Numbered from the stretch's first letter, positions 29,795-64,000 are shown. The stretch: DNA of 64,000 bases from Haliotis rubra (GCF_003918875.1 NW_025767446.1:310001-374000); one strand, 5' to 3'. Translations and numbers: made by a program. The notes: generated by a model not told the origin, from the letters alone.

Positions 29795-29928
29795 NNNNNN
29801 NNNNNNNNNNNNNNNNNNNNNNNNNNNNNNNNNNNNNNNNNNNNNNNNNNNNNNNNNNNNNNNNNNNNNNNNNNNNNNNNNNNNNNNNNNNNNNNNNNNN
29901 NNNNNNNNNNNNNNNNNNNNNNNNNNNN
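29795..29928. other. Assembly gap
   Basis: Run of 134 N. Confidence 1.
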
Positions 29929-37690: not shown

Positions 37691-38035
37691 AGTGAATGAG
37701 TTTTGTTTTACGCCGCTTTTAGTAATATTCCAGCAATATCAAGACTGGGAACACCAAAAACGGGCTTCACACATTGTACCCATGTGAGGAATCGAACCCG
37801 GGTCTTCGGTGTGACGAGCGAACGCTTTAACCACTCGGGTACCCCACCGCCCCGATTAAAACTGACTGACTGACTGACTGAGTTTGGTTTTACGCCCTTT
37901 TTAGCAATATTCCAGCAACATCACGGCGGGGGACACCAGAAATGGGCTTCACACATTGTACCCATGTGAGGAATCGAACCCGGGTCTTCGGCGTGACGAG
38001 CGAACGCTTTAACCACTCGGCTACCCCACCGCCCC
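37691..38035 (-). mobile_element. Two tandem full-length SINE family 1 copies (37691-37853, 37863-38035)
   Basis: Two complete elements are separated by gattaaaac and enclosed by gattaaaacagagtg at 37676-37690 and 38036-38050. Confidence 0.95.
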
Positions 38036-38479
38036 GATTAAAACAGAGTGTAAAAGTCGGCGTATATGTTTGGCTATAAAGTTCGGTGACCAAGTGTCAA
38101 TTTACTCCGACGTCGAGGAAGGTGTTCATGGTATCAATCATCGTTTTGCTTTGCCGGGCTTGAATATGTAACAGGACGCCGCGATAAAGATGTTTCATGG
38201 CAGTGAGAGGCGTAAATGAATACATAAAGTGCACGAAATATAGCGGCTAGAAACAGTCATTTTACGAACGCTTTGTTTGCTCCACACTCGTGTCCATTTT
38301 GAGTGCATCGATGCCAAATGGTTGGTCAGAGTGGCATGCTCCAACATCCTTCATAGTGACGTTACGTTACACGAGACTGTACAGTTACAGTTACAAAGCC
38401 TTTAAATTATTTGAATTATTCTTCATGTGAGCTTGTTTTGACCCTCTGGTACCCATTAACTGCTGGGAGGGCGACTCAT

Positions 38480-38718
38480 CTTTGTTTGTTTGTTTGTCCC
38501 TGCATTCAGCAATATTCCAGCTATATGGCGGCGGTCTGTAAATAATCGAGTCTGGAACAGACAATCCAGTGATCGACATCATGTGCATCTATCTACGCAA
38601 TTGGGATACGCTAACATGTGTCAACCAAGTCAGCGAGCCTGACCACACGATCCCGTTAGTCGCCTCTTACGACAAGCATGGGTTACTTAAGAAAGTTCTA
38701 ACCCAGATCTTTAAGGGT
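38480..38718 (-). mobile_element. SINE family 2, well-preserved copy (another at ~50130-50330)
   Basis: Contains cttgtcgtaagaggcgactaacgggatcg, the shared tail and (aaac)n. Confidence 0.9.
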
Positions 38719-39196
38719 TGCTCATGTTGGAGAAACACATTCCCCAAAATTGTTAGTATCAGAACATCGCAGCCATACCCGTGTTCGTGAGTTCCACAAA
38801 AACGGAGGACGTTGATGAAACGACAGTGATAATATTTCTAAATCTACAGAGTTGGGTCTGATTGGTTAACGCTGATCAACTACGGTGTTATGCATTTACA
38901 ATTTAACTAAGATGGAAAATAATGATTAATTGATAGCCTTAGAATAATTGTCGTTAGCAGGAGTTGCCAACAATCTTGAATCAAACGAAAACTGTCCTGA
39001 ACTGACTCACATCAAACATGCTTGACCCGGATGTATGGCAGTGAGTGAGTGAGTTTAGTTTTTCGCTGCTTTTAGCAACATTCCAGCAATATCAGGAAGG
39101 TGTAGACCAGAAATGGGCTTCGGCGTGACAAGCATATGCTTTAACCATAGGCTACCCCACCGCCACCTGTATAACAGACACTATATGAGAACTGCA

Positions 39197-40605
39197 AACG
39201 TTGGGAACACATGTTGGTGGGGGCACTGTGATATGTAGGGAACACATGTTGGTGAGGGCAGTGTGATATGTTGGGAACACATGTTGGTGGGGGCAGTGTG
39301 ATATGTTGGGAAAACATGTTGGTGGTGGCAGTGTGATATGTTGGGAACACATGTTGGTGGGGGCACTGTGATATGTTGGGAACACATGTTGGTTGGGGCA
39401 CTGTGATATGCTGGGAACACACATGTTGGTGGGGGCACTGTGATATGTAGGGAACACATGTTGGTGGGGGCACTGTGATATGTAGGGAACACATGTTGGT
39501 GGGGCACTGTGATATGTTGGGAACACATGTTGGTGGGGGCACTGTGATATGTTGGGAACACATGTTGGTGGGGGCAGTGTGATATGTTGGGAACACATGT
39601 TGGTGGGGGCACTGTGATATGTTGGGAACACATGTTGGTGGTGGCACTGTGATATGTTGGGAACACATGTTGGTGGTGGCACTGTGATATGCTGGGAACA
39701 TATGTTGGTGGGGGCACTGTGATATGTTGGGAACACATGTTGGTGGGGGCACTGTGATATGTTGGGAACACATGTTGGTGGGGGCAGTGTGATATGTAGG
39801 GAACATATGTTAGGGAACACATATTTGGTGGGGGCACTGTGATATGTTGGGAACATATGTTGGTGGGGCACTGTGATATGTTGGGAACACATGTTGGTGG
39901 TGGCACTGTGATATGTTGGGAACGCATGTTGGTAGGGACACTGTCATATGTTGGGAACACATGTTGGTACGGGCACTGTGATATGTTGGGAACACATGTT
40001 GGTGGGGTCGCTATGATATGTTGGGAACACATGTTGGTGGGGGCACTGTGATATGTTGGGAACACATGTTGGTACGGGCAGTGTGATATGTTGGGAACAC
40101 ATGTTGGTGGTGGCACTGTGATATGTTGGGAACACATGTTGGTGGTGGCACTGTGATATGTTGGGAACACATGTTGGTGGGGGCACTGTGATATGTTGGG
40201 AACACATGTTGGTGGGGGTTCTGTGATATGTTGGGAACACATGTTGTTGGTGGCACTGTGATATGTTGGGAACACATGTTGGTGGGGGCACTGTGATATG
40301 TTGGGAACACATGTTGGTGGGGGCAGTGTGATATGTTGGGAACACATGTTGGTGGGGGCACTGTGATATGTTGGGAACACATGTTGTTGGTGGCACTGTG
40401 ATATGCAGGGAACACATGTTGTTGGAACACTGTGATATGAACACATGTTGTTGGTGGCACTGTGATATGCTGGGAACACATGTTGTTGGTGGCACTGTGA
40501 TATGTTGGGAACACATGTTGTTGGTGGCACTGTGATATGCTGGAAACACATGTTGGTGGTGGCACTGTGATATGCTGGGAACACATGTTGGTGGTGGCAC
40601 TGATA
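39197..40605. repeat. 35-bp G-rich satellite, about 40 copies
   Basis: Unit gttggtgggggcactgtgatatgttgggaacacat; the period is 35 (aacacatg at 40201 and 40236). Confidence 0.98.
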
Positions 40606-40804
40606 CATGTAGTCTCATTGGTCACCCAAGATAGAACACATGGCAACTAATTTCATGATGTCCTCCATTCTTTTAAATCAAAAATTACTTAGCCAGTAAT
40701 GAGCAATCAGTCAACTTATTGGCGGTTAATACTTTGATGGAAGGACGTTGTTTTTACACAAGTACTTTAAGACAGGGTGTATTCAGTATAGATTATCTCA
40801 AAGT

Positions 40805-41820
40805 GTGAGAGATCGCAGATCCAAATCGTGGTGATCGCAAGAGATATCCATGATCGTGAGGTATCGTGATAATCGTGGCAAAATATTAAACATGGTTAAT
40901 ATTTTGCTACGATCATGCCGATAGATTTAGCTATCGCACCAGAACGCGGTACTGCGTAGTAGAGAATATATGGAAAACATCGTATAAGAGCGTGAGTAAG
41001 CGTGGAGTGTGTGTGGATGATCGTAATACATCGTAATAACGAGTACCAGATGTTAGTTCCCATTGTCCCACGATTCTACCAAGATCTATTGCGATTCTAT
41101 AAAGATATATTACGATCTATTATGATTCTATGAAGATCTCCTACTCTATGTCACGTTGTACACAATCTATATCGCTCTAAAAAAATTACGATTCAATGCA
41201 TTTCTATGAACTTTTTAACACGCTGTACTACGAATAGCGTCCACGATCTATCACGATCTATGACGCTCCCTTGTGCTGCGACACGTTCTTCTGCGTTTGG
41301 TGTGCTTTCCTATAAATTGTGTCAAGCTGCCAGAAGAAATTCATTGTCATCCAACTGCAAGCCATATCACACTATTTCATCGTCATTTTCATTGTAAAGA
41401 TATAGGAGATGGGATCGAAAAAGGGCAAGGGGAAAGGAAAGGGCTCCAAAGTAGCTCATGCTGTCCGAGAATCATGTTATAATCGTGTTTAATCGCCCTT
41501 CTTTGTCTAAACAGAAGGTAACAAAAGAAAGCAGATCGTTATGAACGTTTCAAAGCCGACGAAATCGCAACAGATCGTATTCTCAAATCGTGATGGTCGT
41601 AAAAAAGTCGCTACAGATCGTAAATTAATCTCAACAGATCTTCATTGAAGCGTAACTGATCCAATATCCAATCGTAAGAATGCGTAACAGATCCAATCAG
41701 AGCTTATGAAATCGCGTCAAGAGCGTAAAGAAGGGGAAAAATATACAAAATGTTCCACCATCGTGAAGTTCTAATACGATATTTTGGTTCGCGTCAGATC
41801 GACATAATCGTGGCGCTCTC
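40805..41820. mobile_element. Degenerate non-autonomous DNA transposon (Harbinger-like, ATCGT-rich arms)
   Basis: Dense atcgt/acgat motifs in alternating orientation, plus the imperfect palindrome gcaaaatattaaacatggttaatattttgc at 40878-40907. Termini are not resolved. Confidence 0.45.
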
Positions 41821-42104
41821 TTCCCATAGGGAGAGCTTGGGATGTGTGTGTGGGGTGGGGTGGGTGGGGGTGGGGGTGGTGGTGTTTGAGGGATTACCTT
41901 CAAGTCGTACAAAGGCCATTCTATATTTTTACAGGCACAAGGTTGATAAGAAATGTTGAAGTGGTAAAGAACTGATATTTGACATTTTATGACATAATTT
42001 ATTTGGTGTCCCCATTAATAATCACAAGATAAAAACATATCACATGAAATATCAATAGATCAAATATTGCACCAAACATTACCAATTACAAATATATGAA
42101 AGGC

Positions 42105-45923: not shown

Positions 45924-48900
45924 TGCGACATTTGACAAATCTTGCAATCTCGGGTTCTCGCGCTTTTGTGCCAATTGCCCATACAGGTCTATGTAACGAT
46001 TTTCAAAAACACAAAAACGCAAGAATGTGAGATTGTGACATTTCACAAATCTTGCACTTTTGTGCCAATTGTCCATACAGGTCTATGTAACGATTTTCAA
46101 AAACACAAAAACGCAAGAATGTGAGATTGCGACATTTCACAAATCTTGCACTTTTGTGCCAATTGCCCATACAGGTCTATGTAACGATTTTCAAAAACAC
46201 AAGAACGCAAGAACTTGAGATTGCGACATTTGACAAATCTTCCAATCTCATGTTCTCGCACTTTTGTGCCAATTGCCCATACAGGTCTATGTAACGATTT
46301 TCAAAAACACAAGAACGCAAGAACGCGAGATTGCGACATTTGACAAATCTCGCAATCTTGTGTTCTCGCGCTCTTGTGCCAATTGCCCATACAGGTTTAT
46401 GTAACAATTTTCAAAAATAAAAGAACGCAAGAACGCGAGATTGCGACATTTGACAAATATCGCAATCTCGCGCTTTTGTGCCAATTGCCCATACAGGTCT
46501 ATGTAACGATTTTCAAAAACACAAAAACGCAAGAATGTGAGATTGCGACATTTCACAAATCTTGCACTTTTGTGCCAATTGCCCATACAGGTCTATGTAA
46601 CGATTTTCAAAAACACAAAAACGCAAGAATGTGAGATTGCGACATTTCACAAATCTTGCACTTTTGTGCCAATTGCCCATACAGGTCTATGTAACGATTT
46701 TCAAAAACACAAGAACGCGAGAACGCGAGATTGCGACATTTGACAAATCTTGCAATCTCGAGTCTCGCGCTTTTGTGCCAATTACCCATACAGGTCTATT
46801 TAACGATTTTCAAAAACACAAGAACGCGAGAACGCGAGATTGCGACATTGGACAAATCTTGCAATCTCGCGCTTTTGTGCCAGTTACCCATACAGGTCTA
46901 TGTAACGATTTTCAAAAACACAAGAACGCGAGAACGCGAAATTACGACATTTGACAAATATCGCATTCTCGCGCTTTTGTGCCAATTGCCTATACAGCTC
47001 TATGTAACGATTTTCAAAAATATAAGAACGCAAGAACGCGAGATTGCGACATTTGACAAATCTCGCAATCTCGCACTTTTGTGCCAATTGCCCATACAGG
47101 TCTATGTAACGATTTTCAAAAACAAAAGAACGCGAGATTGCGACATTTGACAAATCTTGCGTTCTCGCGCTTTGATGCCAATTACCCATACAGTTCTATT
47201 TAAGGATTTTCAAAAACACAAGAACGCGAGAACGCGAGATTGCGACATTTGACAAATCTCGCGATCTCGCGTTCTCGTGCTTTTGTGCTAATTGCCCATA
47301 CAGTGTTTTTCTGTTTGTTTTTCTTTTGTTTTTTATTGTTTTTTTATTGTTCCCAATGTGATGAGTACAAGCATATAGAGGAATATGTGCACATACAAGC
47401 TAGTGGGCTCAAAAGCGATATAGTGCACTAAGTACATTGAATATCAATGTTAGTGATATGTTTTTTGTTTAATAGTCATTCAGGGTTAAATTCAGGGATG
47501 AGAGGAAACCATTTGACTCAAAAGCTTTCAACATTATTATTTCTTCTGGAGATGAATGATTCAGTGGTACATATGTCTTTCAATATCCTTAAGTAATTAT
47601 CAACTTTTGGAATTGTTTTTGTCAAAGAGCAAGTGTAAATATATCTCTTAGCAGATAAGATTATGTGGTTCAATAATGGGTTCTTACCTACAAACCCAAC
47701 CAAATCAAAGATTTTGTCAAATTAAGTGTTTGGATACGTTTCGTAATCCACTGTTCAAGTTTCTTCCAGAAAGTTTTGGTTTCATCACATTCCCAATATA
47801 CATGGCATAAGGTTTCAACAGAATCATTACACAAAGAACATATTGTATTGTCCACCAGATTCATTCTAAAAAGTTCTTTTTTGGTATAAACAATTCCGTG
47901 CAGTTTCACATCTCTTAAAATATATATTGAAAATCTAACAGTTTCACATCTCTTAAATTCTTTCTACAAGTATGAAAAATCAAATGCTAATCAAAATCAA
48001 TACAGTCAAATAATGTTTCCCATGTTTGGCACATTTGAGGTTTAACATTTTCAGATAACAATTTATCATAGAATAATCTTGAACCTTTTCTTGGGGATAT
48101 GAAATCCTTTTGGAGTGAATTTATTGTGAGGTCATTAATGTTTATATATCTATATTCCTTTAAAGTCTTTTTCCAAGGTTCAGGTAAAATATATATAACA
48201 TATCCAAGATCTAAGTGAGTACCTTTTATATCGAATTTAAGCTTCAATTGATCAAAGGATATAAACCCATGTTCATCACAAAGAGCTTTGATCGTCAAGA
48301 TTCCACTTTTAGACCAGTGACTAATGATGTGATTTGAGTTTTTGAAATTGTTATTCAACCATAAAGGTTGGGCTAAGATTTCATTAAGATTTCATTAAGA
48401 ACGCGAGATTGCGACATTTGAGAAATCTCGCAATCTCGCGTTCTCGCGCTTTTGTGCCAATTGCCCATACAGGTCTATGTAACGATTTTCAAAAACACAA
48501 GAACGCGAGAACGCGAGATTGCGACATTTGACAAATCTTGCAATCTCGCGTTCTTGGACTTTTGTGCCAATTGCCCATACAGGTCTATGTAACGATTTTC
48601 AAAAACAAAAGAACGCAAGAACGTGAGATTCCGACATTTGACAAATCTCGCAATCTCACGCTTTTGTGCCAATTGCCCATACAGGTCTATGTAACGATTT
48701 TCAAATACACAAGAATGCAAGAACGCGAGATTGTGACATTTGACAAATCTTGCAATCTCGGGTTTTCGCGCTTTTGTGCCAATTTCCCATACAGGTCTAT
48801 GTAACGATTTTCAAAAACACAAGAACGCAAGAATGTGAGATTGCGACATTTGACAAATCTCGCAATCTCACGCTTTTCTGCCAATTGCCCATACAGGTCT

Positions 48901-49888
48901 ATGTACCGATTTTCAAAAACACAAGAATGCAAGAACGCAAGATTGCGACTTTTGACAAATCTTGCGCTTTTGTGCCAATTGCCCATACAGGTCTATGTAA
49001 CGATTTTCAAAAACACAAGAACGCGAGATTGCGACATTTGACAAATGTCGCAATATCGCGTTCTCACGTTCTTGTGTTTTTGAAAATCGTTACATAGCCC
49101 TGTATGGGCAATTGGCACATGAATATGAGATCCTTTTGGAGTGAATTTATTGTGAGGTCATTAATGTTTATATATCTATATTCCTTTAAAGTCTTTTTCC
49201 AAGGTTCAGGTAAAATATATATAACATATCCAAGATCTAAGTGAGTACCTTTTATATCGAATTTAAGCTTCAATTGATCAAAGGATATAAACCCATGTTC
49301 ATCACAAAGAGCTTTGATCGTCAAGATTCCACTTTTAGACCAGTGACTAATGATGTGATTTGAGTTTTTGAAATTGTTATTCAACCATAAAGGTTGGGCT
49401 AAAATTTCATTAAGATTTCATTAAGAACGCGAGATTGCGACATTTGAAATCTCGCAATCTCGCGTTCTCGCACGTAATCTTGCGTTCTCGCGACATTTGA
49501 CAAATCTCGTAATCTTGCGTTCTCGCGCTTTTGTGCCAATTGCCCATACAGGTCTATGTAACGATTTTCAAAAACGCAAGAACGCGAGATTGCGACTTTT
49601 GACAAATCTTGCAATCTTGCGTTCCTGGACTTTTGTGCCAATTGCCCATACAGGTCTATGTAACGATTTTCAAAAACACAAGAACGCAAGAATGTGAGAT
49701 TGCGACATTTGACAAATCTCGCAATCTCACGCTTTTCTGCCAATTGCCCATACAGGTCTATGTACCGATTTTCAAAAAAAAGAACGCAAGAACGCGAGAT
49801 TGCGACATTTGACAAATCTTGCAATCTCACGCTTTTCTGCCAATTGCCCATACAGGTCTATGTAACAATTTTCAAAAACACAAGAACA
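45924..49888. repeat. Hairpin-forming satellite (94/102/110-bp units) interrupted by LINE fragments
   Basis: The anchor caggtctatgtaacg (allowing single mismatches) occurs at 45984, 46078, 46172, 46282, 46392, 46494, 46588 and 46682. Each unit carries inverted arms around atttgacaaat. Confidence 0.97.
47305..48390 (-). mobile_element. L1/Tx1-clade LINE 3' fragment inserted in the satellite; part duplicated at ~49122-49420
   Basis: Reads HWSKSGILTIKALCD, CSLCNDSVETLCHVYWEC and LNHIILSAKRYIY, with an A-rich tail at 47305-47350. Confidence 0.9.
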
Positions 49889-50749
49889 AGGAGGCGGGAA
49901 GGATATTAATTTACATTTAATTTTTTTCTAATCAAACTTTTTAAGGCACCTGTGTACATTTACTGTAGAAGGATTCGATTCACATGCATCATGCATGTTC
50001 AGTAGGGCTACGTTTGTGTAGCATTTCATCAAGTAAAGAAAGTAGGAATGTAACAGGGATGAATTAAGTGTTTGTATATTGTGTACGTAAATGAATAACT
50101 AATTATCAGTGAGTGAGTGATTGAGTCTAGTTTATATGGCGGCGGTATGTAAATAATCGAGTCTGGACCAGACAATCCAGTGATCAACATCATGAGCATC
50201 GATCTGCGCGATTGGGAACCGATGATATGTGTAAACCAAGTCAGCGAGCCTGACCACCCGATCCCTTTAGTAGCCTCTTACGACAAACATGAGTTCCTGA
50301 AGATACATTCTAACACGGACCTTCACGGGTGTCTTTGTGTTTCATGTACAGTTCTGTGTGGCAGTTTGGTCAGAATCAAAGGTTAGTTATTATACATTAT
50401 GATTTTACATACATAGTAAATTAAACCCTAATATTAATCATTATACAAAATAGGTATAAATATGCCCATGATAACAAAATAAAAGTCAATACACGATATA
50501 CCATTTAACGTGTATGAATGTGCTTATGGTTGTTTTCTATATGTCCAGTCAATATGCTGGCTAGTAGTTCTTGTTTGGTAACTATTTTCTGTATCATGTA
50601 AGATTGATATATCTCATCTATCATGTATATTGTATGTACTGACAAAGATTACATTTGATCAGTGTGTGGTGCTTATATGGGATTATTGCATGCGTTGACT
50701 GTGCGGCTGCTGGATGTACAGACACACTCTCGTGTCACACACAGGATAG

Positions 50750-53700
50750 GTTTATTGGCAGTTGTCCTCCCTCCGAAAGGATACTTGGTCCACTTCTGCC
50801 TTTGGGGTATCGTCTGGGGTATCCCTTGCCCTGCCTCTAAGGGACTTCAAGGTTCAAATCAGCCAGTAGGTCGTTTTCTTAGTGGTCACTTGGCTCGACA
50901 TGTTGGCAGTTATCCAGCTCAAAGAACAACACTTCGTCCACTTCTCCTTCTGGGATATCTTCCCGTCAGTCGTCCTGCCTCCGAAGGGCTTCAAGCTCCA
51001 TTTCTGCCCCTAAGGACGTATTCTTGGCAGGTCCTTGAATCCAGATGTCTTCTTGGCAGTCGCCCTGCCACTGAGGGACTTCAAGGTCCTTTTCTGTCTC
51101 CAGGAAGTCTTCTTAGTAGCTGCTTGTCTAAAGATGTCTTCTTGGCAGTCGGCAAGCCTCTGAGGGATTTCAAGGTCCACTTCTTCCCCCAGGACGTCTT
51201 CACAGTAATAAAATGCCACTCTATTTACGAGATCTCTTCTTGGCACTCCACAAGCCTCCAGAAGAGTACTTGGTGAAATTCTGGCTATGGGATATCTCTT
51301 TCTAAAATCGTCCACCCTCTGAAAATGCCACTATGTTTACGAGCTGTATTCTTCGCAGTCGGCAAGCCTCCAGAAGAGTACTTGATCCACTTCTTCCTAT
51401 GGGATATGTTCTTGGCAGTCGTCCTGCCTCTGAGGGATTTCAAGGTCCTTTTCTGTCTCCAGGATGTCTTCATAATAGCTGCTTTTCTCAATATGTCCTC
51501 TTGGCAGTCAGCAAACCTCCAGAAGAGTACTTCGTCCACTTCTGCCTATGGTATATCATCTTAGCAGTCCTGATGCATTTAAGGTATTTCAAGGTCCACT
51601 TCTGCCCCCAGAACGTCTCAGTAATAAAATGCAACTATGTTTACGAACTGTATTCTTGGCAGTCGGCAAGCCTCCAGAAGAGTACTTGATCCACATGTGC
51701 CTATGGGATATTTTCCTGGCAGTCTTTATGCATTTAAGGTATTTCAAGGTCCACTCCTAGCCCCAGGACGTATTCTCAGTAATAAAATGCCACTCTGTTG
51801 ACGAGATCTCTTCTTGGCAGTAGACAAGCCTCCAGAAGAGTACTTGGTCCACTTCTGCCTATGGGATATCTTCTTGGCAGTCATGCTGCCTCTGCGGTAT
51901 TTCAAGAGTACACTTCTGCCCTCAGGACGTCTTCTTAGTAGCTGCTTGTCTCCACATGTCTTCTTGGCAGTTCGCAAGCCCCCAGATGAGTACTTGCTCA
52001 ATTTTCACCTATAGGATTTCTTCTTGGCAGTCGTCCTGCCTCTGAGGTATTTCAAGGTCCACTTCTGTCCCCAGGAGGTCTTCTTGGTAGTAAAATGCCA
52101 CTATGTTTACGAGCTGTATTCTTGGCAGTCGGCAAGCATCCAAAAGAGTACTTGCTCTATTTTTAAAAATAACGAATGTTCTTGGCAGTCGTCCTGCCTC
52201 TGCTGTATTTCAAGGTCCACTTCTGCGCTCAGGACGTCTTCTTAGTAGCTGCTTGTCTCCAGATGTCTTCTTGGCAGTCGGCAAGCCTCCAGAAGAGTAC
52301 TTCGTCCACTTCTGCCTACGTGATATCTTCTTTGCAGTTCTTATGCATTTAAGGTATTTCAAGGTCCACTTCTGCCAACAGGACGTATTCTCAGTAATAA
52401 AATGCCACTCTGTTGACAAAATCTCTTCTTGGCAGTCGGCGAGCCTCCACAAGAGTACTCGGTCCACTCCTGCCTATGGGATATCTTCTTGGCAGTCATC
52501 CTGCCTCTGAAGGACTTCAAGATCCTTTTCCGTTTCCAGGATGTCTTCTTAGTAGCTGCTTGTCTCCAGATCTCTTCTTGGCAGTCGACGAGTCTCCAGA
52601 AGAGTACTTGGTCCACTTCTGACTATGGGATATCTTTTTGGAGTTGCCCTTCATCTGCGGTATTTCAAGGTCCACTTCTGCCCTCAGGACGTCTTCTTAG
52701 TAGCTGCTTGTCTCCAGATGTCTTCTTGGCAGTTGGGAGGCCTCCAAAAGAGTACTTGCTCCATTATCACCTATGGGATATCTTCTTGGCAGTCGCCCTG
52801 CCTCCGAGGTATTTCAAGGTCCACTTCTGTCCACTTGACGTGTTCTTGGTAGTAAAATGCCACAATGTTTACGAGCTGTATTCTTCGCAGTCGGCAAGCC
52901 TCAAGATACTTGGTCCACTCCTGCCTATGGGACATCTTTCTTGGCAGTCGTCCTGCCTCTGAGGGACTTCAAGGTCCTTTTCTGTTTCCAAGATATCTTC
53001 TCAGTAGCTGCTTGTCTCCAGATGTCTTCTAGGCAGTCGGCAAGCGTTCAGAAGAGAACTTCGTCCACTTCTGCCTAAGGGATATCTTCTTTGCTCTTCT
53101 TATGCATTTAAGGTATTTCAAGGTCCACTTCTGCCCTCAGGACATCTTGTTAGTAGCTGCTTGTCTCCAGATATCTTCTTGCCAGTTCGGAAGCCTCCAG
53201 AAGAGTACTTGGTCCACTTCTGCCAATGGGATATCTTCTTGGCAGTCGGCAAGCCTCCAGAAGAGAACATGGTCCACTTCTGCCTTTGGGATATCTTCTT
53301 GGCTGTCGTCCTGCCTCTGAGGTATTTCAAGGTCCACTTATGCCCTCAGGACGTCTTCTTAGTAGCTGCTTGTCTCCAGATGTCTTCTTGGCAGTCGGCA
53401 AGCCTCCAGAAGAGTGCTTGGTCCACTTCTTCCTATGGGATATCTTCTTTGCAGTTCTTATGCATTTAAGGTATTTCAAGGTCCACTTCTGCCCCCAGGA
53501 CGTCTTCTCAGTCATAAAATGCCACTCTGTTGACGATATCTCTTCTTGGCAGTCGGCAAGCCTCTAGAAGAGTACTTGGTCCACTTCTGCCAATGGGATA
53601 TCTTCTTGCCAGTTCGGAAGCCTCCAGAAGAGTACTTGGTCCACTTCTGCCTATGGGATATCTTTTGGCAGTCGTCCTGCCTCTGAGGTATTAGTAGCTG

Positions 53701-55370
53701 CTTGTCTCCAGACGTCTTCTTGGCAGTCGGCAAGCCTCCAGAAGAGTGCTTGGTCCACTTCTTCCTATGGGATATCTTCTTTGCAGTTCTTATGCATTTA
53801 AGGTATTTCAAGGTCCACTTCTGCCCCCAGGACGTCTTCTCAGTCATAAAATGCCACTCTGTTGACGATATCTCTTCTTGGCAGTCCACAAGCCTCCAGA
53901 AGAGTACTTGGTCCACTTCTGCCAATGGGATATCTTCTTGCCAGTTGAAGCAGTCGTCCACTTCTGCCTCTGGGATATCTTCTTGGGGATCTGCGGTATT
54001 TCAAGGTCCACTTCTGTCCCCAGGATGTCTTCTTAGTAGCTGCTTGTCTCCAGATGTCTTCTAGGCAGTCGGCAAGCTTTCAGAAGAGAACTTCGTCCAC
54101 TTCTGTCTATGGGATATCTTCTTTGCAGTTCTTATGCATTTAAGGTATTTCAAGGTCCACTTCTGGCCCCGGGACGTCTTTTCAGTAATAAAATGCCACT
54201 CTGTTGACGAGATCTCTTCTTGGCAGTCCACGAACCTCCAGAAGAGTACTTGGTCCACTTCTGCCAACTGGATATCTTCTTGGCAGTCGTCCTGCCTCTG
54301 AGGTATTTCAAGGTCCACTTCTGTCCACTTCTGTCCACTTGACGTCTTCTTGGTAGTAAAATGCCACTATGTTTACGAGTTGTTCTCTTGGAAGTCGGCA
54401 AGCCTCCAGAAGAGTATTTCATCCAGATGTGGATATGGGATATCTTCTTGGCAGTTGTCCTGCCTCTGAGGGACTTCAAGGTCCTTTTCTGTCACCAGGA
54501 TGTCTTCTAAGTAGCTGCTTGTCTCCACATGTCTTCTTGGCAGTGGGCAAGGCTCCAGAAGAGTACTTCGGCCACTTGTGCCTATGGGACATCTGTTTTG
54601 CAGTTCGTCCTGCCTCTGAGGTATTAGTAGCTGCTTGTCTCCAGACGTCTTCTTGGCAGTCGGCAAGCCTCCAGAAGAGTACTTGGTCCACTTCTTCCCT
54701 AAGGATAATCTTCTTTCCAGTTCTTATGCATTTAAGGTATTTCAAGGTCCACTTCTTCCTCAAGGAAGTCTTCTCAGTCATAAAATGCCACTCTGTTGAC
54801 GATATCACTTCTTGGCAGTCGGCAAGCCTGCAGAAGAGTACTTCGTCCACTTCTGCCAATGGGATATCTTCTTGGCAGTTGCCTGCCTCTGCGGTATTTC
54901 AAGGTCCACTTATGCCCACAGTACGTCTTTTTAGTAGCTGCTTGTCTCCAGATCTCTTCTTGGCAGTCGACAAGCCTCCAGAAGAGTACTTTGTCCACTT
55001 CTGCCTAAGGGATATCTTCTTTGCAGTTCTTATGCATTTAAGTTATTTCAAGGTCCACTTCTGCCCAGAGGACGTCTTCTTAGTAGTAAAATGCAACTCT
55101 GTTTACGAACTCTATTCCTGGTAGTTTCTGGAACGGTACTATGTTCGCATCTGCCTATGGCATTTCTTCTTGGCAGTCGTCCTGCCTCTGACGCACTGTA
55201 AGTTCCTCTTCTTTCTGCAGGATGTTTTCTCAGTGGCTGGTTGTCTTCAGATGTCTTTCTTGAAGCTTTCAGATGTGTTTTTCCATATCGCCCTTCCTCC
55301 AGAATGGCAGGTGGTCAACTTCTGAATCTTGGGGGACTTCAAGGTAAATTCCTTCCCCCAGGACGATGGT
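50750..55370. repeat. Modular complex repeat of 60-, 29- and ~38-bp modules derived from a 30-bp monomer
   Basis: Modules start cttct(t). Examples: cttcttggcagtcggcaagcctccagaagagtacttggtccacttctgcctatgggatat (60 bp) and cttcttagtagctgcttgtctccagatgt (29 bp). Confidence 0.95.
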
Positions 55371-55719
55371 CCTAATAGTAAAGGTAAAGAATATTTCACA
55401 TCATTGATACTTACTACATGAAAAATTTATACCAAAACTTTATGTTCAATAGTGAAAAAATGCCTTAACATGAAACAAAAGTTGTAAATATTAACAATAC
55501 GTTATAGTAAACAAGGATATTTTATCTTTTAGCCTAAAGATTATTTCAAGAACTTGCCTCCTTGGTCTTCTGTCTGCTGTTTGGCAATGGTACTGCCTCT
55601 AGAAGAGTCCTTCGTCCACGTCTGGCCATGGAATGTCTTCTTGGCAGTCGTCCTGCCTCTGGGGGACTTCAAGGTCCAATTCTGCCCCCAGGACGATGGC
55701 TTCCACGGTCCTAATAGTA

Positions 55720-57240
55720 AAGATAGATTAGTTTAATATTTTACATCATTGATACTTACTACACAGACAATGAATGCCAAATGTATATTTAAAAAGCTTT
55801 GACCCGAAACAATGTTGAAATGTGTCACAAGACATAAGTGTGAACAAGGATATATTTGATCTTTTCTTCAAAAAATACTTACTTGCCTACCTGGTCGACG
55901 GTCATAAAAGTAAAGGTGAAGAATGGATTACTGCACAGATTAGGACTGGGTGAGTGTAGTTTTACGCTACGTTTTTAAAATATTCAAGCAATTTCATATT
56001 AGGGACAACAAATATGGACTTCTCACATTGTACCCATATGGGAAATCGATCAGAGTCGTTTTCTGCGTGACGAGCGAACGTTTTAACCACAAGGTTACCC
56101 CCAGCGCCCCCGCAGGTTATGGATGTAAAAAGAATATGCAGGGTCGTGAAAAACATGATGTAACCTGAATATCAAGCCGAAAAGTTTGCAATACTTTACC
56201 AGCAGGTGGTCCCAGTCGGCCAGTACACTGCCCCAAAGTGACCATGCGGGATTTGCTCTGTCTGAGAACTACCTACTGAAGGAATACATGGTGGGTAAAC
56301 ACTAAGTTACGCCATCTCTATGACAGCATCATACAGGGCATGCATGAGGGGTCCCTATCTACCATACCACCTAAAATCCACCAGTCAAGTGCAGTCAGCA
56401 TTTTGCCTACTTGGGGATGCTGAGAAAGACTGGGAGGCACAGAGTGTAGCGACCCTAACTAGCTGGTCTGTTGCTGCAACAACCATCCTGACTGGACAGC
56501 CAGGCCCTAGCACCGAACCTCCTCCAAAGTACAGTCGGCGGGGACCTACGCGGAAGCCGAGAGACTATGGAGCCACCATTAGACAAAAACCCATCCCACC
56601 GGTCTCTCGGAAAAGCAGTGTACTGAAGTCCGTGTAGAAGAGGGATGGAGGGAGTCAACACCAAATCCAGACTGTGCCAGGGTTCCTGCGTCTGAAAGAG
56701 ATGAGTCATGCATAAGCATCAGGAATCACACTTCTCACATGTAGATTTGTTTCATAACAGTGCGGTTTTAGGTCGCGTTTAGCAATAATCCAACGGGGGA
56801 GTTTAGAAGTGGGCGGGGGTCACACATAGTAGCTATTTTTGGAATCGAACCGTGGCCCTCGGCATGGCGAGTCAACAATTCAACCACAAGGCTTCACCAC
56901 ATCCTCGTTTATATGCAGGAAATAGTACCGACATATACTGGGGCATTAAAAACAACAAACCTCTTTACCTGTTGCAGCTTTGGGCCAGGCAATTGATGTA
57001 TTATGCCATATATTGTATGTATGTCTTCACCTCTACGTACAGTTTGAATGGTACACCCGTGGTTGCTGAAAACACTGCTGAATTAGTGTGATCTGCCAAT
57101 GTACTTACACATGTATTTTGATAATGTTAAGATAAGAATCTTAAGTCCAGATATACGGTGACCACTTTTCTCAGCAGATCAAACTCGCCATCCACAATTC
57201 CTAACCTTGTCCAAATGGTTCTTTAACAAAAAAAAGAGTT
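55720..57240. repeat. ~1.5-kb spacer duplicated at ~62350-63890 (offset ~6630 bp); contains two SINE family 1 relics
   Basis: Near-identical sequence, for example 56320-56637 vs 62950-63267. Confidence 0.95.
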
Positions 57241-60200
57241 TGAAGAACTTGCCTCCTTGGTCTGCTGTTTGGCAGTGGTTCTGCCTCCAGAAGAGTCCTT
57301 GGTCCACGTCTATCCATGGAATGTCTTCTCGGCAGCCGTCCTGCCTCTGGGGAACTTCAAAGTCCAATTCCGCCCCCCTGGACGATGGCGTCCACGGTCC
57401 TAACAGTAAAGGTAAAAATTATTTTAATATTTCACATCATTGATACTTACTACACAGATAATGAATGCCCGATATATATGCTGAATCGTGAAAAACGATT
57501 CAACCTGAAACACAAGATTTAATGTTGCAAAAGACATTAGCGTGGAGACAACAAGGATGTATTTTATATTTTCCTCAAAAGATTGTTTGAAGAACTTGCC
57601 TCCCTGGTCCTCTGTCTGCTTTATGGCAGTCTTCCTGCCTCCAGAAGAGTCCTTGGTACACGTCTGTCCATGGAATGTCTTCTTGGCAGTCGTCCTGCCT
57701 CTGGGGGACTTCAAGGTCCGATTCTACCCCCTGGATGATGGCCTCTACAGTCCTAATCGTGAAAGTAAAGAATATTTAAATATTACACATCATTAATACT
57801 TACTACACAGATAATGTATGCCAAATGTATATCCTAAATGGTGAAAAACAATTCAACCTGAAACACAAGATGTAATGTTGCAAAAGACATAAGCGTGGAC
57901 AGAACAAGGATATATTTTATCTTTTCGTAAAAAGATTGTTTGAAGAACTTGCCTCCCTGGTCTTCTGTCTGCTTTTTGGCAGTCGTCCTGCCTCCAGAAG
58001 AGTCCTTGGTCCACCTCTGTCCATGGAATGTCTTCTTGGCAGTCGTCCTGCCTCTGGGGGACTTCAAGGTCCAATTCTGCCCCCAGGATCATGGCCTCCA
58101 CGGTCCTAATAGTAAAGGTAAAAAATATTTTAATATTACACATCATTGATACTTACTACACAGATAATGAAAGCCCGATATATATGCTGAATCGTAAAAA
58201 ACGATTCAACCTGAAACACAAGATTTAATGTTGCAAAAGACATTTGCGTGGACAGAACAAGGATATATTATATCTTTTCCTCAAAAGATTGTTTGAAGAA
58301 CTTGCCTCCCTGGTCCTCTGTCTGCTTTTTGGCAGTCGTCCTCCCTCCAAAAGAGTCCTTGGTCCACTTCTGTCAATGCAATGTCTTCTTGGCAGTCGTC
58401 CTGCCTCTGGGGGACGTCAAGGTCCAATTCTGCCCACAGGACGATCTCCTTCACGGTTCTAATAGTAAAGGTAAAGAACATTTAATTAATTCACATCATT
58501 CATAGTTACTACACAGATAATGAATGCCAAATGTATATCCTAAATCGTGAAAAACGATTTAACCTGAAACACAAGATTTAATGTTGCAAAAGACATTAGC
58601 GTGGACAGAACAAGGATATATTTTATCTTTTCCTCAAAAGTTTGTTTGAAGAACTTGCCTCACTTGTCCTCTGTCTGCTTTTTGGCAGTCGTCCTCCCTC
58701 CAGAAGAGTCCTTGGTCCACGTCTATCAATGCAATGTCTTCTTGGCAGTTGTCCTGCCTCTGGGGGACTTCAAGGTCCAATTCTGCCCCCAGGACGATTG
58801 CCTCCACAGTCCTAATAGTGAAAGTAAAGAATATTTTAATATTACACTTCATTAAAACTTACTACACAGATAATGAATGCCAAATGTATATCCTAAATCG
58901 TGAAAAACGACTCAACCTGAAACACAAGATGTAATGTTGCAAAAGATATTAGCGTGGACAGAACAAGGATATATTTTATCTTTTCCTCAAAAGACTGTTT
59001 GAAGAACTTGCCTCCCTGGTCCTCTGTCTGCTTTTTGGCAGTCGTCCTGCCTCCAAAAGAGTCCTTGGTCCATTTCTGTCAATGGAATGTCCTCTTGGCA
59101 GTCGTCCTGCCTCAGGGGGACTTCAAGGTCCAATTCCGCCCCAGGGACGATGGCGTCCACGGTCCTAATAGTAAAGGTAAAGAATATTTTAATATTTCAC
59201 ATCATTAATACTTACTACACAGATAATGAATGCCCGATATATATGCTGAATCGTGAAAAACGATTCAACCTGAAACACAAGATGTAATGTTGCAAAAGAC
59301 ATAAGCGTGGACAGAACAAGGATATATTTTATCTTTTCGTAAAAAGATTGTTTGAAGAACTTGCCTCCCTGGTCTTCTGTCTGCTTTTTGGCAGTCGTCC
59401 TGCCTCCAGAAGAGTCCTTGGTCCACGTCTGTCCATGGAATGTCTTCTTGGCAGTCGTCCTGCCTCTGGGGGACTTCAAGGTCCAATTCTGCCCCCGGGA
59501 TCATGGCCTCCACGGTCCTAATAGTAAAGGTAAAAAATATTTTAATATTACATATCATTGATACTTACTACACAGATAATGAAAGCCCGATATATATGCT
59601 GAATCGTGAAAAACGATTCAACCTGAAACACAAGATTTAATGTTGCAAAAGACATTTGCGTGGACAGAACAAGGATATATTATATCTTTTCCTCAAAAGA
59701 TTGTTTGAAGAACTTGCCTCCCTGGTCCTCTGTCTGCTTTTTGGCAGTCGTCCTCCCTCCAAAAGAGTCCTTGGTCCACTTCTGTCAATGCAATGTCTTC
59801 TTGGCAGTCGTCCTGCCTCTGGGGGACGTCAAGGTCCAATTCTGCCCACAGGACGATCTCCTTCACGGTTCTAATAGTAAAGGTAAAGAATATTTAAATA
59901 ATTCACATCATTCATAGTTACTACACAGATAATGAATGCCAAATGTATATCCTAAATCGTGAAAAACGATTTAACCTGAAACACAAGATTTAATGTTGCA
60001 AAAGACATTAGCGTGGACAGAACAAGGATATATTTTATCTTTTCCTCAAAAGTTTGTTTGAAGAACTTGCCTCACTTGTCCTCTGTCTGCTTTTTGGCAG
60101 TCGTCCTCCCTCCAAAAGAGTCCTTGGTCCACTTCTGTCAATGCAATGTCTTCTTGGCAGTCGTCCTGCCTCTGGGGGACGTCAAGGTCCAATTCTGCCC

Positions 60201-62350
60201 ACAGGACGATCTCCTTCACGGTTCTAATAGTAAAGGTAAAGAATATTTAAATAATTCACATCATTCATAGTTACTACACAGATAATGAATGCCAAATGTA
60301 TATCCTAAATCGTGAAAAAAGATTTAACCTGAAACACAAGATTTAATGTTGCAAAAGACATTAACGTGGACAGAACAAGGATATATTTTATCTTTTCCTC
60401 AAAAGTTTGTTTGAAGAACTTGCCTCATTTGTCCTCTGTCTGCTTTTTGGCAGTCGTCCTGCCTCCAGAAGAGTCCTTGGTCCACGTCTATCAATGCAAT
60501 GTCTTCTTGGCAGTTGTCCTGCCTCTGGGGGACTTGAAGGTCCAATTCTGCCCCCAGGACGATTGCCTCCACAGTCCTAATAGTGAAAGTAAAGTATATT
60601 TTAATATTACACTTCATTAAAACTTACTACACAGATAATGAATGCCAAATGTATGTCCTAAATCGTGAAAAACGATTCAACCTGAAACACATGATGTAAT
60701 GTTGCAAAAGACATTAGCGTGGACAGAACAAGGATATATTTTATCTTTTCCTCAAAAGACTGTTTGAAGAACTTGCCTCCCTGGTCCTCTGTCTGCTTTT
60801 TGGCAGTCGTCCTGCCTCCAAAAGAGTCCTTGGTCCATTTCTGTCAATGGAATGTCTTCTTGGCAGTCGTCCTGCCTCTGGGGGACTTCAAGGTCCAATT
60901 CCGCCCCAGGGACGATGGCGTCCACGGTCCTAATAGTAAAGGTAAAGAATATTTTAATATTTCACATCATTAATACTTACTACACAGATAATGAATGCCC
61001 GATATATATGCTGAATCGTGAAAAACGACTCAACCTGAAACACAAGATGTAATGTTGCAAAAGATATTAGCGTGGACAGAACAAGGATATATTATATCTT
61101 TTCCTCAAAAGATTGTTTGAAGAACTAGCCTCCCTGGACCTCTGTCTGCTTTATGGCAGTCGTCCTGCCTCCAGAAGAGTCCTTGGTCAACTTCTGTCAA
61201 TGGAATGTCTTCTTGGCAGTTCTCCTACCTCTGGGGGACGTCAAGGTCCAATTCTGCCCCCAGGACGATGGCGTCCACGAGTCCTAATAGTGAAAGTAAA
61301 GAATATTTTAATATTTCACATCATTAATACTTACTACACAGATAGTGAATGCCAAATGTATATCCTAAATGGTGAAAAACGATTCAACCTGAAACACATG
61401 ATGTAATGTTGCAAAAGATATTAACGTGGACAGAACAAGGATATATTTTATCTTTTCCTCAAAAGATTGTTTGAAGAACTTGCCTCCCTGGTCCTCTGTC
61501 TGCTTTTTGGCAGTCGTCCTGCCTCCAAAAGAGTCCTTGGTCCACTTCTGTCAATGGAATGTCTTCTTGGCAGTCGTCCTGCCTCTGGGGGACTTCAAGG
61601 TCCACTTCTGCCCCCGGGACGATGGCCTCCACGGTCCTAATAGTAAAGGTAAAGAATATTTTAATATTTCTCATCATTAATACTTACAACATAGATAATG
61701 ACTGCCCGATATATATGCTGAATCGTGAAAAACGATTCAACCTGAAACACAAGATTTAATGTTGCAAAAGACATTAGCGTGGACAGAACAAGGATATATT
61801 ACATCTTTTCCTCAAAAGATTGTTTGAAGAACTTGCCTCCCTGGTCCTCTGTCTGTTTATGGCAGTCCTCCTGCCTCCAGAAGAGTCCTTGGTCCACTTC
61901 TGTCCATGTAATGTTTTCTTGGCAGTTGTCCTGCCTCTGGGGCACTTCAAGGTCCAATTTTGCCCACAGGACGCTGGCCTCGACAGTCCTAATAGTGAAA
62001 GTAAAGAATATTTTAATATTACACATCATTAAGACTGACTACACAGATAATAAATGCCAAATGTATATCCTAAATGGTGAAAAACGATTCAATCTGAAAC
62101 ACAAGATGTAATGTTGCAAAAGACATTAGCGTGGACAGAACAAGGATATGTTATATCTTGTCCTCAAAAGATTGTTTGAAGAACTTGCCTCCCTGGTCCT
62201 CTGTCTACTTTTTTGGCAGTCGTCCTGCCTCCAAAAGAGTCCTTGGTCCACTTCTGTCCATGGAATGTCTTCTTGGCAGTCGTCCTGCCTCTGGGGGACT
62301 TCAAGGTCCAATTCTGCCCCCAGGACGATGTCGTCCACGGTCCTAATAGT
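57240..62350. repeat. 353-bp tandem array, about 15 units (diverged outlying units at ~55370-55720 and from ~63900)
   Basis: The anchor gtggacagaacaagg occurs at 57895, 58248, 58601, 58954, 59307, 59660, 60013, 60366, ~60719, ~61072, 61426, 61779 and 62131. Confidence 0.98.
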
Positions 62351-64000
62351 AAAGATAGATTAGTTTAATATTTTACATCATTGATACTTACTACACAGAC
62401 AATGAATGCCAAATGTATATTTAAGAAGCTTTGACCCGAAACAATGTTGAAATGGGTCTCAAGACATTAGCGTGAACAAGGATATATTTGATCTTTTCTT
62501 CAAAACATAATACTTGCCTACCTGGTCGACGATCATAAAAGTAAAGGTGAAGAATGGATTACTGCACAGATTAGGACTGGGTAAGTGTAGTTTTACGCTA
62601 CTTTTTTAAAATATTCCAGCCATTTCACATTGGGGACACCAAATATGGACTTCTCACATTGTACCCATATGGGAAATCGAGCAGGGTTGGTTTCTGCGTG
62701 ACGAGCGAACGCTTTAACCAAAAGGTTACCCCCACCGCCCCCGCAGGTTATGGATGTAAAAAGAATATGCAGGGTCGTGAAAACAAGATGTAACCTGTAT
62801 ATCGAACTGAAATATTGCAATACTTTACCAGCAGGTGGTCGCAGTCGGCCAATACACTGCCCCCAAAGTGACCTTGCGGGATTTGCTTTGTCTGAGAACT
62901 ACCTACTGAAGGAATATATGGTGGGTAAACACTAAGTTACGCCATCTCTATGACAGCATCATACAGGGCATGCATGAGGGGTCCCTATCTACCATACCAC
63001 CTAAAATCTACCAGTCAAGTGCAGTCAGCATTTTGCCTACTGGGGGATGCTGAGAAAGACTGGGAGGCACAGAGTGTAGCGACCCTAACTAGCTGGTCTG
63101 TTGCTGCAACAACCATCCTGACTGGACAGCCAGGCCCTAGCACCGAACCTCCTCCAAAGTACAGTCGGCGGGGACCTACGCGGAAGCCGAGAGACTATGG
63201 AGCCACCATTAGACAAAAACCCATCCCACCGGTCTCTCGGAAAAGCAGTGTACTGAAGTCCGTGTAGAAGAGGGATGGAGGAGTCAACACCAAATCCAGA
63301 GTGTGCCAGGGTTCCTGCGTCTGAAAGAGATGAGTCATGCATAAGCATCAGGAATCACACTTCTCACATGTAGATTTGTTTAATAACAGTGAGTGAGTGT
63401 GGTTTTATGCCGCTTTTAGCAATAATCCAACGGGGGAGATTAGAAGTGGGCGGGGGTCACACATAGTAGCTATTTTTGGAATCGAACCGTGGCCCTCGGC
63501 ATGGCGAGTCAACAATTCAACCACAAGGCTTCACCACATCCTCGTTTATATGCAGGAAATAGTACCGACATATACTGGGAGAAAATATTGCTGAGTGGGG
63601 CATTAAAAACAACAAACCTCTTTACCTGTTACACCTTTGGGCCAGGCAATTGATGTATTATGCCACATATTGTATGTATGTCTTCACCTCTACGTACAGT
63701 TTGAATGGTACACCCGTGGTTGCTGAAAATACTGCTGAATTAGTGTGATCTGCCAATGTACTTACACATGTATTTTGTTAATGTTAAGATAAGAATCTTA
63801 AGTCCAGATATACGGTGACCACTTTTCTCAGCAGATCTAACTCGCCATCCACCATTCCCAACCTTGTCAAAATGGTTCTTTACTTTGAAGAAAAAAATGT
63901 GCACGATACATACATAAGACATTAGCGTGAACAAGAATATTTTTAACAAAAAAAGAGTTTGAAAAACTTGCCTCCCTGGTCCTCTGTCGGCTTCTTCGCA

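Follow-up and report, generated by a model that had tools for sequence, protein, structure and literature searches.

Anatomy of the 353-bp units

The subject of this analysis is a family of tandem repeats found in a stretch of 64,000 nucleotides from the abalone Haliotis rubra (GCF_003918875.1 NW_025767446.1:310001-374000; contig C2556), referred to below as the window. Tandem Repeats Finder (TRF) places an array of 353-bp units at 57260-62420 (14.6 copies, 91% matches), and the array continues beyond the window as far as approximately C2556:377731. Read on the minus strand, each unit consists of a 153-nt GC-rich segment and a 200-nt AT-rich spacer, and the junctions between the two have the form of splice sites. 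An acceptor, TATTAG|G, is found after a pyrimidine tract at one end of the GC-rich segment and a donor, GAG|GCAAGT, at the other; the sequence directly 5' of the exon-like part reads ..TTCTTTACCTTTACTATTAG| and that directly 3' of it |GCAAGT. A sequence-only reading of the window had proposed that the units combine a 153-nt exon-like part with a 200-nt GC-AG intron-like part, and this was borne out by TRF, by the positions of the motifs and by a table of the exons. Between 55372 and 63972 the minus strand holds 12 acceptors of the form TATTAG|GAC and 17 donors of the form AG|GCAAGT. At the level of sequence the spacers have the signature of GC-AG introns, with an AG|GCAAGT donor and a normal acceptor, and the full GAG|GCAAGT is present in 16 of the 20 units of the C2556 array. 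Only 2.3% of shuffled units contained AG|GYAAGT on either strand, and the donor of the real units falls exactly at the boundary between GC-rich and AT-rich composition. The exon- and intron-shaped anatomy of the unit is more than chance.

The main array (57246..62342, minus strand) holds 15 units of 353 bp with spacers of 200-201 nt, and 12 of its 15 exons are 153 nt long; it includes a recent higher-order duplication of four units (1412 bp). A representative exon-like segment at 59012..59164 (minus strand), already delimited in the sequence-only reading, is exactly 153 nt and its AT-rich spacer at 59165..59364 (minus strand), with the donor GAG|GCAAGT, is 200 nt. A conserved island, TGTGTAGTAAGTAT.AATGATGTGA, occupies spacer positions 143-171, and the pyrimidine tract and TATTAG acceptor come next. 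The exons in the window share the reading frame TV[ED]AIVLGAELDLEVPQRQDDCQEDIPWTEVDQGLFWRQDDCQKADRGPG. The AG|G of the junction forms an Arg codon, with two bases from one exon end and one from the start of the next, and the exon is therefore phase-symmetric in this frame. Eleven of the 16 full exons in the window are both 153 nt long and open in the TV[ED]AIVLGAELDLEVPQRQDDCQEDIPWTEVDQGLFWRQDDCQKADRGPG frame, and ten intact exons follow one another in an unbroken run from 60929 to 57600. The irregularities that had been noticed earlier (indels near ~61278, ~61857 and ~62210, and a weakened donor in some units) correspond to a unit at 61282 with a displaced acceptor and a stop, to exons of 152 nt (61988-61837) and 154 nt (62342-62189), and to an exon at 57399-57246 that has lost its donor.

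The units are accompanied by an element of approximately 1.3 kb, here called T, one copy of which lies inside a spacer (55930..57240, minus strand). A second copy, 94% identical to the first, lies between two unit blocks at 62561..63882 (minus strand; C2556:372561-373882) and a third beyond the window (C2556, L013 2027-3347). The window closes on the 3' end of the next exon-like segment (63972..64000, minus strand; the full segment is 64123-63972 on the contig), and beyond it the C2556 array adds five units, the third T and one further unit. Just 3' of the first T is a remnant exon of 17 nt (GACCGTCGACCAGGTAG|GCAAGT; 55887..55903, minus strand), which is the exon minus approximately 135 nt. 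The last complete 153-nt exon-like segment (55558..55710, minus strand) has an in-frame stop and is followed by the last spacer (55557-55372).

The intronless module array and the origin of the unit

Positions 24-134 of the exon are equivalent to approximately 1.85 copies of the 60-nt module of a neighbouring minisatellite. This minisatellite forms an intronless array at 50752..55371 (minus strand) of about 30 units of approximately 150 nt, which match exon positions 16-134 with 74-89% identity. The linkers between the modules of this array are 26-42 nt long and the unique ends of the exon (15 + 19 nt) together have approximately the length of one linker. The colinearity of the modules and the linker-sized exon ends suggest that the 353-bp unit is a module unit of approximately 150 nt that carries a 200-nt AT-rich insert at one fixed point. 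An intronless array has been found 3' of the units at three loci, on C2556, C291 (L018) and C87 (L022). The sequence-only reading had likened the 4.6 kb of spacer-free modules after the acceptor at 55372 to a large terminal exon; the array is indeed present, but no long open reading frame (ORF) was found in it or in those of the other two loci, in which stops occur every 27-44 codons in all frames and no open stretch on the unit strand exceeds 162 codons. Frame +2 of the array (50750-55370) reads GRTTAKK.., which, given these stops, is a by-product of the module sequence. The last module is immediately followed by an AATAAA (50751..50756, minus strand) with a TG-rich stretch next to it; this hexamer is a candidate poly(A) signal, offered as a lead only. 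The hexamer does not occur inside the 4.6-kb array; the background in the window is 0.81 per kb.

A first look at the genome gave, as lower bounds, 306 candidates for the spacer alone, 243 for the unit and 355 for the exon core. No dispersed solo copies of the spacer were found, all 40 scored matches (again a lower bound) being within arrays. An origin of the spacer from an Introner or a miniature inverted-repeat transposable element (MITE)-like sequence was considered and rejected, since the copy number of the spacer is similar to that of the unit and there are no solo copies outside arrays.

A family of paralogous loci

Fourteen stretches were taken from the genome and 124 full units aligned, with the more divergent relatives on C2202, C2502, C413, C2622, C328 and C611 and the outer ends of the loci lying outside the alignment. 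Units of 76-97% identity are present on at least nine contigs, and there are at least eight array loci in the Haliotis rubra genome. Four paralogous lineages can be distinguished: A (C2556, C48 and C71), B (C460 and C291), C (C2303) and D (C2299 and C87). Identity between units is 90-97% within arrays and 76-84% between lineages. With 14.6 head-to-tail copies in the window and at least 20 at other loci, on at least nine contigs in all, the repeat is by description a satellite DNA. The stretches from C2299 and C87, and likewise those from C460 and C291 (L014-L023), show mirrored coordinates and a consensus divergence of 0-1.3%, and these two pairs may be unpurged haplotigs rather than separate loci.

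The position and orientation of element T within the array are the same at every locus examined; its copies are 79-87% identical between lineages, and in C460 T and four units together form a higher-order repeat of 2.5 kb. The core of T (T positions ~314-1107) is repeated at high copy number, with 3074 candidates in a first look at the genome. T contains an acceptor-like site, ctctttcag|ACGCAGG (~56690), and the sequence after this site recurs as the N- or C-terminal part of three Haliotis asinina protein models (P0002, P0010 and P0011) that are discussed below. T is a composite of two or more pieces that contain tRNA-like box motifs, for example GGTTCGATTCC near 56880; ARAGORN predicted no tRNA and Rfam gave no match over 50000-64000, a region that includes T.

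Directly upstream of the first unit, outside the window within C2556:377745-378045, is a conserved block of approximately 240 nt (C2556:377803-378039; L013 3803-4039), the 5' block. Each array locus examined has one copy at its upstream end, with 76-99% identity (76-81% between lineages), and there are only 25 candidates for it genome-wide. It has an almost invariant core of 40 nt, GACTGGGATTAGGTTATGTAAGGTGTCTGGTTTGCCCTTTGT. No Rfam match and no conserved ORF were found in it; an ORF of 83 codons that runs through the block in lineage A is not kept in lineage D or in C2104 and was discarded. From its position and conservation the 5' block is a candidate for the promoter or leader of the family. 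Homology between loci continues upstream of the block into a GGT-rich 42-nt minisatellite common to three paralogous loci, which suggests that whole loci spread by segmental duplication rather than by transposition. This minisatellite was seen at L013 4990-10000 (C2556:378990-384000), L014 2805-5010 and L020 9-397. Its opposite strand reads as a proline-rich repeat of 14 residues (SPPPETQPPSLL..) with open stretches of 256-345 codons, and this may be either a coding repeat of mucin or extensin type or no more than a minisatellite.

A solitary short copy of the locus is present at C2104:193526-195339 (L026 5526-7339) and comprises the 5' block, a shortened exon, T, a remnant exon and one full unit, stopping at the donor position of the exon. 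Downstream of it (L026 7416-9737) are retroelement-like ORFs with a reverse-transcriptase-like motif, ..YQFRVIPFGYITAPRVFTT... Divergent relatives of the exon, whose peptides are 44-89% identical to H. asinina P0001, are found at C413:1965000-1977000, C2622:1994000-1997100 and C2202:985000-998000. Their spacing is different (a period of approximately 541 bp in C413) and they have stop-free frames of 124-203 codons; they may be the most gene-like members of the family.

Evolution of the exon and the spacer

The sequence-only reading had suggested that divergence be compared between the exon-like and intron-like parts, and the two compartments were found to evolve at different rates. Between lineages the consensus divergence of the exon is 2.6-10% without any indels, whereas that of the spacer is 14-23% and the spacer holds all of the indels. 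The exon is 2-6x slower between lineages than the spacer, element T and the 5' flank. T and the 5' block thus diverge like the spacer, and it is the exon that is the slow compartment. Within arrays the substitutions per site amount to 4.3% in the exon and 6.3% in the spacer. In a McDonald-Kreitman-like contrast, 17 fixed and 412 polymorphic changes in the exon stand against 71 fixed and 665 polymorphic changes in the spacer (odds ratio 0.39, p = 3e-4). At the ends of the exon, the first 23 nt and the last 19 nt lie outside the 60-nt module, yet are about as conserved as the core.

A similar picture emerges for the splice signals. Positions +1G, +3A and +5G of the donor are invariant between lineages and +2 is either T or C, the donor being GT in C48, C71, C460 and C291 and GC in C2556, C2303, C2299 and C87. 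In the close sisters of the C2556 array the canonical AG|GTAAGT is present in 22 of 22 units (C48) and 19 of 20 (C71). Across all 124 units the acceptor AG is kept in 118 and a GT or GC donor in 121, so that a complete exon with both splice sites and an intron is repeated head to tail, at the level of sequence. Within arrays the splice-critical bases are altered in 2.0-2.4% of units as compared with 6.4% for the rest of the spacer, or about 3x less often, although the units are not independent in this comparison because of the higher-order repeats. Judged by these patterns of substitution the unit evolves like an exon plus an intron. An alternative exon on the plus strand (58994-59176) can also be drawn, as had been pointed out, but it does not hold across the family: its GT donor (the reverse complement of ACCTTT) is CCCTTT in lineage D, its acceptor AG is missing in lineage B and there is no plus-strand protein model.

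Coding potential

The sequence-only reading had also noted that one frame is open in most units and had considered a protein-coding 'variable cassette array'. The first observation is correct for the window, as described above, but the exon consensus is open in five of its six frames by composition, which makes an open frame weak evidence for coding, and family-wide the TV[ED]AIVLGAELDLEVPQRQDDCQEDIPWTEVDQGLFWRQDDCQKADRGPG frame is open in 62 of 124 exons. All four lineages have a consensus exon length of 153 nt, which 78 of the 124 single exons share. In lineage A, 33 of 36 full-length exons are open in the TV[ED]AIVLGAELDLEVPQRQDDCQEDIPWTEVDQGLFWRQDDCQKADRGPG frame, as compared with 6 of 36 for the next frame. 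Comparison of synonymous and non-synonymous change by frame, with codon effects at the exon ends scored by treating the phase-symmetric exon as cyclic, showed that the 412 unique within-array variants of the exon fit the neutral expectation in all six frames. In the TV[ED]AIVLGAELDLEVPQRQDDCQEDIPWTEVDQGLFWRQDDCQKADRGPG frame there are 94 synonymous variants (96.7 expected) and 21 stops (22.2 expected). Comparison of the lineages gave 6 synonymous and 15 non-synonymous changes, where 21% synonymous would be expected. No 3-base periodicity of variation was detected in the 124 aligned units, Pfam gave no family for any frame of the unit or the module array, and neither a start codon nor a signal peptide was found upstream of the units. 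By these measures there is no sign of protein coding; the coding reading fails, and with it the cassette array, since the variants are neutral in every frame, only half of the exons are intact and no long repeat protein was found. Among the indel events in the exon, 38 of 73 are changes of 1-2 nt at homopolymer runs. The Haliotis rubra assembly is a Nanopore/Illumina hybrid (PMC6774278) and some of these indels may be assembly errors. Folding of the exon as RNA gave z = -2.4 with two short GGCAG..CTGCC hairpins, a result that is not decisive.

Gene models in Haliotis asinina

Further evidence comes from the annotation of a second abalone species. Four H. asinina RefSeq 'uncharacterized proteins', 100-165 residues long, came up in a word search, and a profile of nine exon peptides run against 1.84 billion representatives found only five true relatives, all of them H. 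asinina XP_ models. The models sit on at least six chromosomes, and no protein with more than three units was found among the 1.84 billion representatives. They join two or three units at the predicted junction in the TV[ED]AIVLGAELDLEVPQRQDDCQEDIPWTEVDQGLFWRQDDCQKADRGPG frame, reading ..LPG|R|NVD.. where H. rubra has ..GPG|R|TVD.., and the core EVPQRQDDCQEDIPWTEVDQGLFWRQ, compared as peptide only, is identical in the two species. An ORF from the opposite strand of the units had no protein match. Two of the models are chimaeric. P0011 is a CBM_4_9 + GH10 protein whose N-terminus has T-derived sequence and one unit, and P0010 joins one unit and T-derived sequence to a fragment that by eye is glutamate-receptor-like, although Pfam gave no family for it. 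As modelled by this independent annotation, the units are spliceable and strand-specific but give no convincing protein.

Interpretation and alternative explanations

These data are consistent with a genus-restricted family of gene-like repeat loci that would be transcribed and spliced into a repeat-rich non-coding RNA, a reading to which we give about an even chance. On the minus strand such a locus would run from the 5' block, as putative promoter or leader, through blocks of 353-bp units and the 4.6-kb intronless array to the AATAAA as putative poly(A) signal, with unit introns that are GC-AG here and GT-AG elsewhere and an occasional longer intron carrying T. The 353-bp unit would have been born when a unit of approximately 150 nt of the 60-nt-based minisatellite gained a 200-nt AT-rich insert; the exon-intron pair would then have been amplified in tandem and, later, whole loci copied to other chromosomes. 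Transcription would proceed from the side of the 5' block and the AT-rich parts would be spliced out, leaving as the mature product a repeat-rich non-coding RNA of 153-nt modules, with selection or homogenisation acting on the nucleotide sequence of the modules and on the splice signals and not on the reading frame. A stronger proposal is that the arrays function as genes whose product is a spliced repeat RNA: an insert with both splice sites would have landed in a module, the pair would have been amplified hundreds-fold, and selection would keep the 153-nt RNA module and the GY..AG boundaries in every paralogue. We regard this as rather unlikely.

Several findings weigh against the gene-like reading. 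Within arrays the variability of the exon is only 0.69x that of the spacer, and the pyrimidine tract is kept no better than the rest of the spacer. Exon distances and spacer distances order the lineages differently, so that exon-specific gene conversion could mimic constraint. The 5' block is followed by a putative leader donor of weak and variable sequence. In H. asinina the models start at an ATG inside the preceding spacer, continue across the donor into the following spacer or are spliced to sequence derived from T, and P0004 and P0009 shift frame from exon to exon; these RefSeq models may be partly ab initio.

A rival reading is that the arrays are an ordinary multi-locus satellite or segmental duplication that makes no transcript of its own. 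The splice-like boundaries would then be by-products of the joining of module and insert, the slow evolution of the GC-rich part would result from gene conversion among modules or from GC-biased conversion, and the H. asinina models would be annotation artefacts. We consider this somewhat unlikely. The arrays are long, comprise hundreds of units, contain higher-order repeats and evolve in concert, as would be expected of a satellite, and their surroundings are repeat-dense, with other satellites at 45956-49887 and 39100-40650. The neutrality of within-array variants in all frames, exon and spacer distances that are not proportional between lineages, and H. asinina models that are short, hop between frames and end in a repeat element also fit. 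What such a satellite would not readily explain is the presence at both composition boundaries of a near-perfect donor and of an acceptor with tract and AG, kept in four lineages despite approximately 20% divergence of the spacer. The conservation of the unique exon ends, which are not part of the module, the slower change of splice-critical bases as compared with their neighbours, the restriction of the gene models to one strand and the single conserved low-copy 5' block at each array locus examined also count against it.

A present or recent coding family, in which each exon would contribute one 51-residue repeat to an acidic, cysteine-containing protein, in the manner of schistosome SmPoMuc or human DAZ, and many of the apparent frameshifts would be errors of the Nanopore-based assembly, is improbable. 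It would account for an exon length of 3 x 51 nt that is phase-symmetric in all lineages, for the ten intact exons in a row, for the bias towards one open frame in lineage A, for the abundance of homopolymer indels in a hybrid assembly and for the peptide core shared with H. asinina. It is contradicted by the neutral counts of synonymous changes and stops, by the ratio of changes between lineages and by the lack of 3-base periodicity in a sequence that is open in five of six frames by composition. Nor was an upstream start codon or signal peptide found, the other lineages that were compared do not preserve the ORF through the 5' block, no Pfam family was found, the five true matches contain no more than three units and the H. 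asinina models switch frame from exon to exon. That the whole locus is a large composite mobile element with internal tandem repeats, spread by transposition in the manner of the non-autonomous Helitron-type elements of oysters, is highly improbable. The same parts do recur in the same order and orientation at many loci, a solitary short copy (5' block, partial unit, T and one unit) exists on C2104 and the core of T is high-copy. However, homology runs on upstream of the 5' block into the GGT-rich minisatellite, as in segmental duplication; neither terminal repeats nor target-site duplications were observed, nor ORFs for a transposase or helicase, with the outer ends of the loci lying outside the comparison; the copy number is low (approximately 25 5' blocks); and the loci are 17-45 kb long.

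Comparison with known systems

Repeats of this kind have precedents, both as tandemly amplified exon-intron units and as long non-coding RNAs (lncRNAs) with repeat exons. In Schistosoma mansoni, exon 2 of the polymorphic mucin genes (SmPoMuc) and its flanking introns form genomic tandem repeats of approximately 1 kb (PMC2576457). As in the abalone family, a small complete exon, with a length that is a multiple of 3, and an intron form the tandem unit, in up to tens of copies per gene, and the genes belong to a lineage-specific multigene family with paralogous groups and frequent recombination. The SmPoMuc repeats differ in being translated (a variable number tandem repeat of nine residues, with proteins and complementary DNAs demonstrated) and in being placed between a signal-peptide exon and 13 unique exons. 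In the abalone family neither unique coding exons nor coding constraint were found, the transcripts are predicted ones, and the arrays are longer and end in an intronless module array.

The lncRNA FIRRE has a repeating RNA domain of approximately 156 nt spread over its exons and derives from a single X-linked locus, with expression and protein partners demonstrated. Its likeness to the abalone family lies in a module of approximately 150 nt repeated in the exons of a spliced non-coding transcript (a predicted one in abalone), with conservation of the module sequence and not of a frame; the abalone family differs in having at least eight loci and a regular 353-bp periodicity, and in the evidence being genomic. 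Amplified exon-intron arrays are also found in coding genes, such as human DAZ (a 72-bp exon in a 2.4-kb unit), the kringle IV-2 repeats of LPA and the Flag silk gene of spiders. These share with the abalone units the tandem amplification of exon and intron, the concerted evolution of both and a variable copy number. They encode proteins, however, and homogenisation in Flag is as strong for introns as for exons; the abalone spacers diverge much faster than the exons between loci. The 'mirage' splice-junction minisatellites, the subject of papers on amphioxus, likewise multiply splice signals by tandem repetition, but they consist of a short intron/exon junction only and lie within an intron of a host gene. 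A mirage identity was rejected for the abalone repeat: the unit is a whole exon and a whole intron-like spacer with its own 5' block, and no host-gene exons were found around the array. Complex satellites, too, form head-to-tail arrays of hundreds of monomers on several chromosomes, with array-specific variants and higher-order units (here of four units, and of T with four units, 2.5 kb, in C460). The abalone monomer is distinguished from them by two compartments with a 2-6-fold difference in rate, by its GY..AG boundaries and by a fixed polarity relative to unique flanking blocks.

The family itself appears to be undescribed, since literature searches found nothing on it. If the units are spliced, nature would provide in this family a clear case of an array of satellite size that is maintained as a transcription unit, in which selection can be read from the exon and intron compartments of one monomer, and a dated example of a minisatellite becoming a multi-exon gene. 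If in addition the loci are functional repeat-RNA genes, a satellite would be maintained as a gene, and an intron gain would have been followed by amplification exon by exon. If they are not spliced, the family would be an ordinary complex satellite with a misleading anatomy. It also offers an explanation for abalone RefSeq 'uncharacterized protein' models, including the chimaeras with a GH10 xylanase-like gene and with the glutamate-receptor-like fragment, which are probably not real proteins.

Other features of the window

The satellite at 45956-49887 is separate from the family and consists of three blocks of approximately 102-110 bp periodicity (consensus ..CTTTTGTGCCAATTGCCCATACAGGTCTATGTAACGATTTTCAAAAACACAAGAACGC..) with 76-89% matches. 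A run of 134 N, which represents a gap or masked sequence, is found at 29795-29928. The minisatellite at 39100-40650 lies within a stretch of strong GC skew (38000-42000), and several of its minus-strand frames are open for up to 475 codons (repeat ..HQHVFPTYHSAPTNMCSQHITVPPPTCVPNISQCP..).

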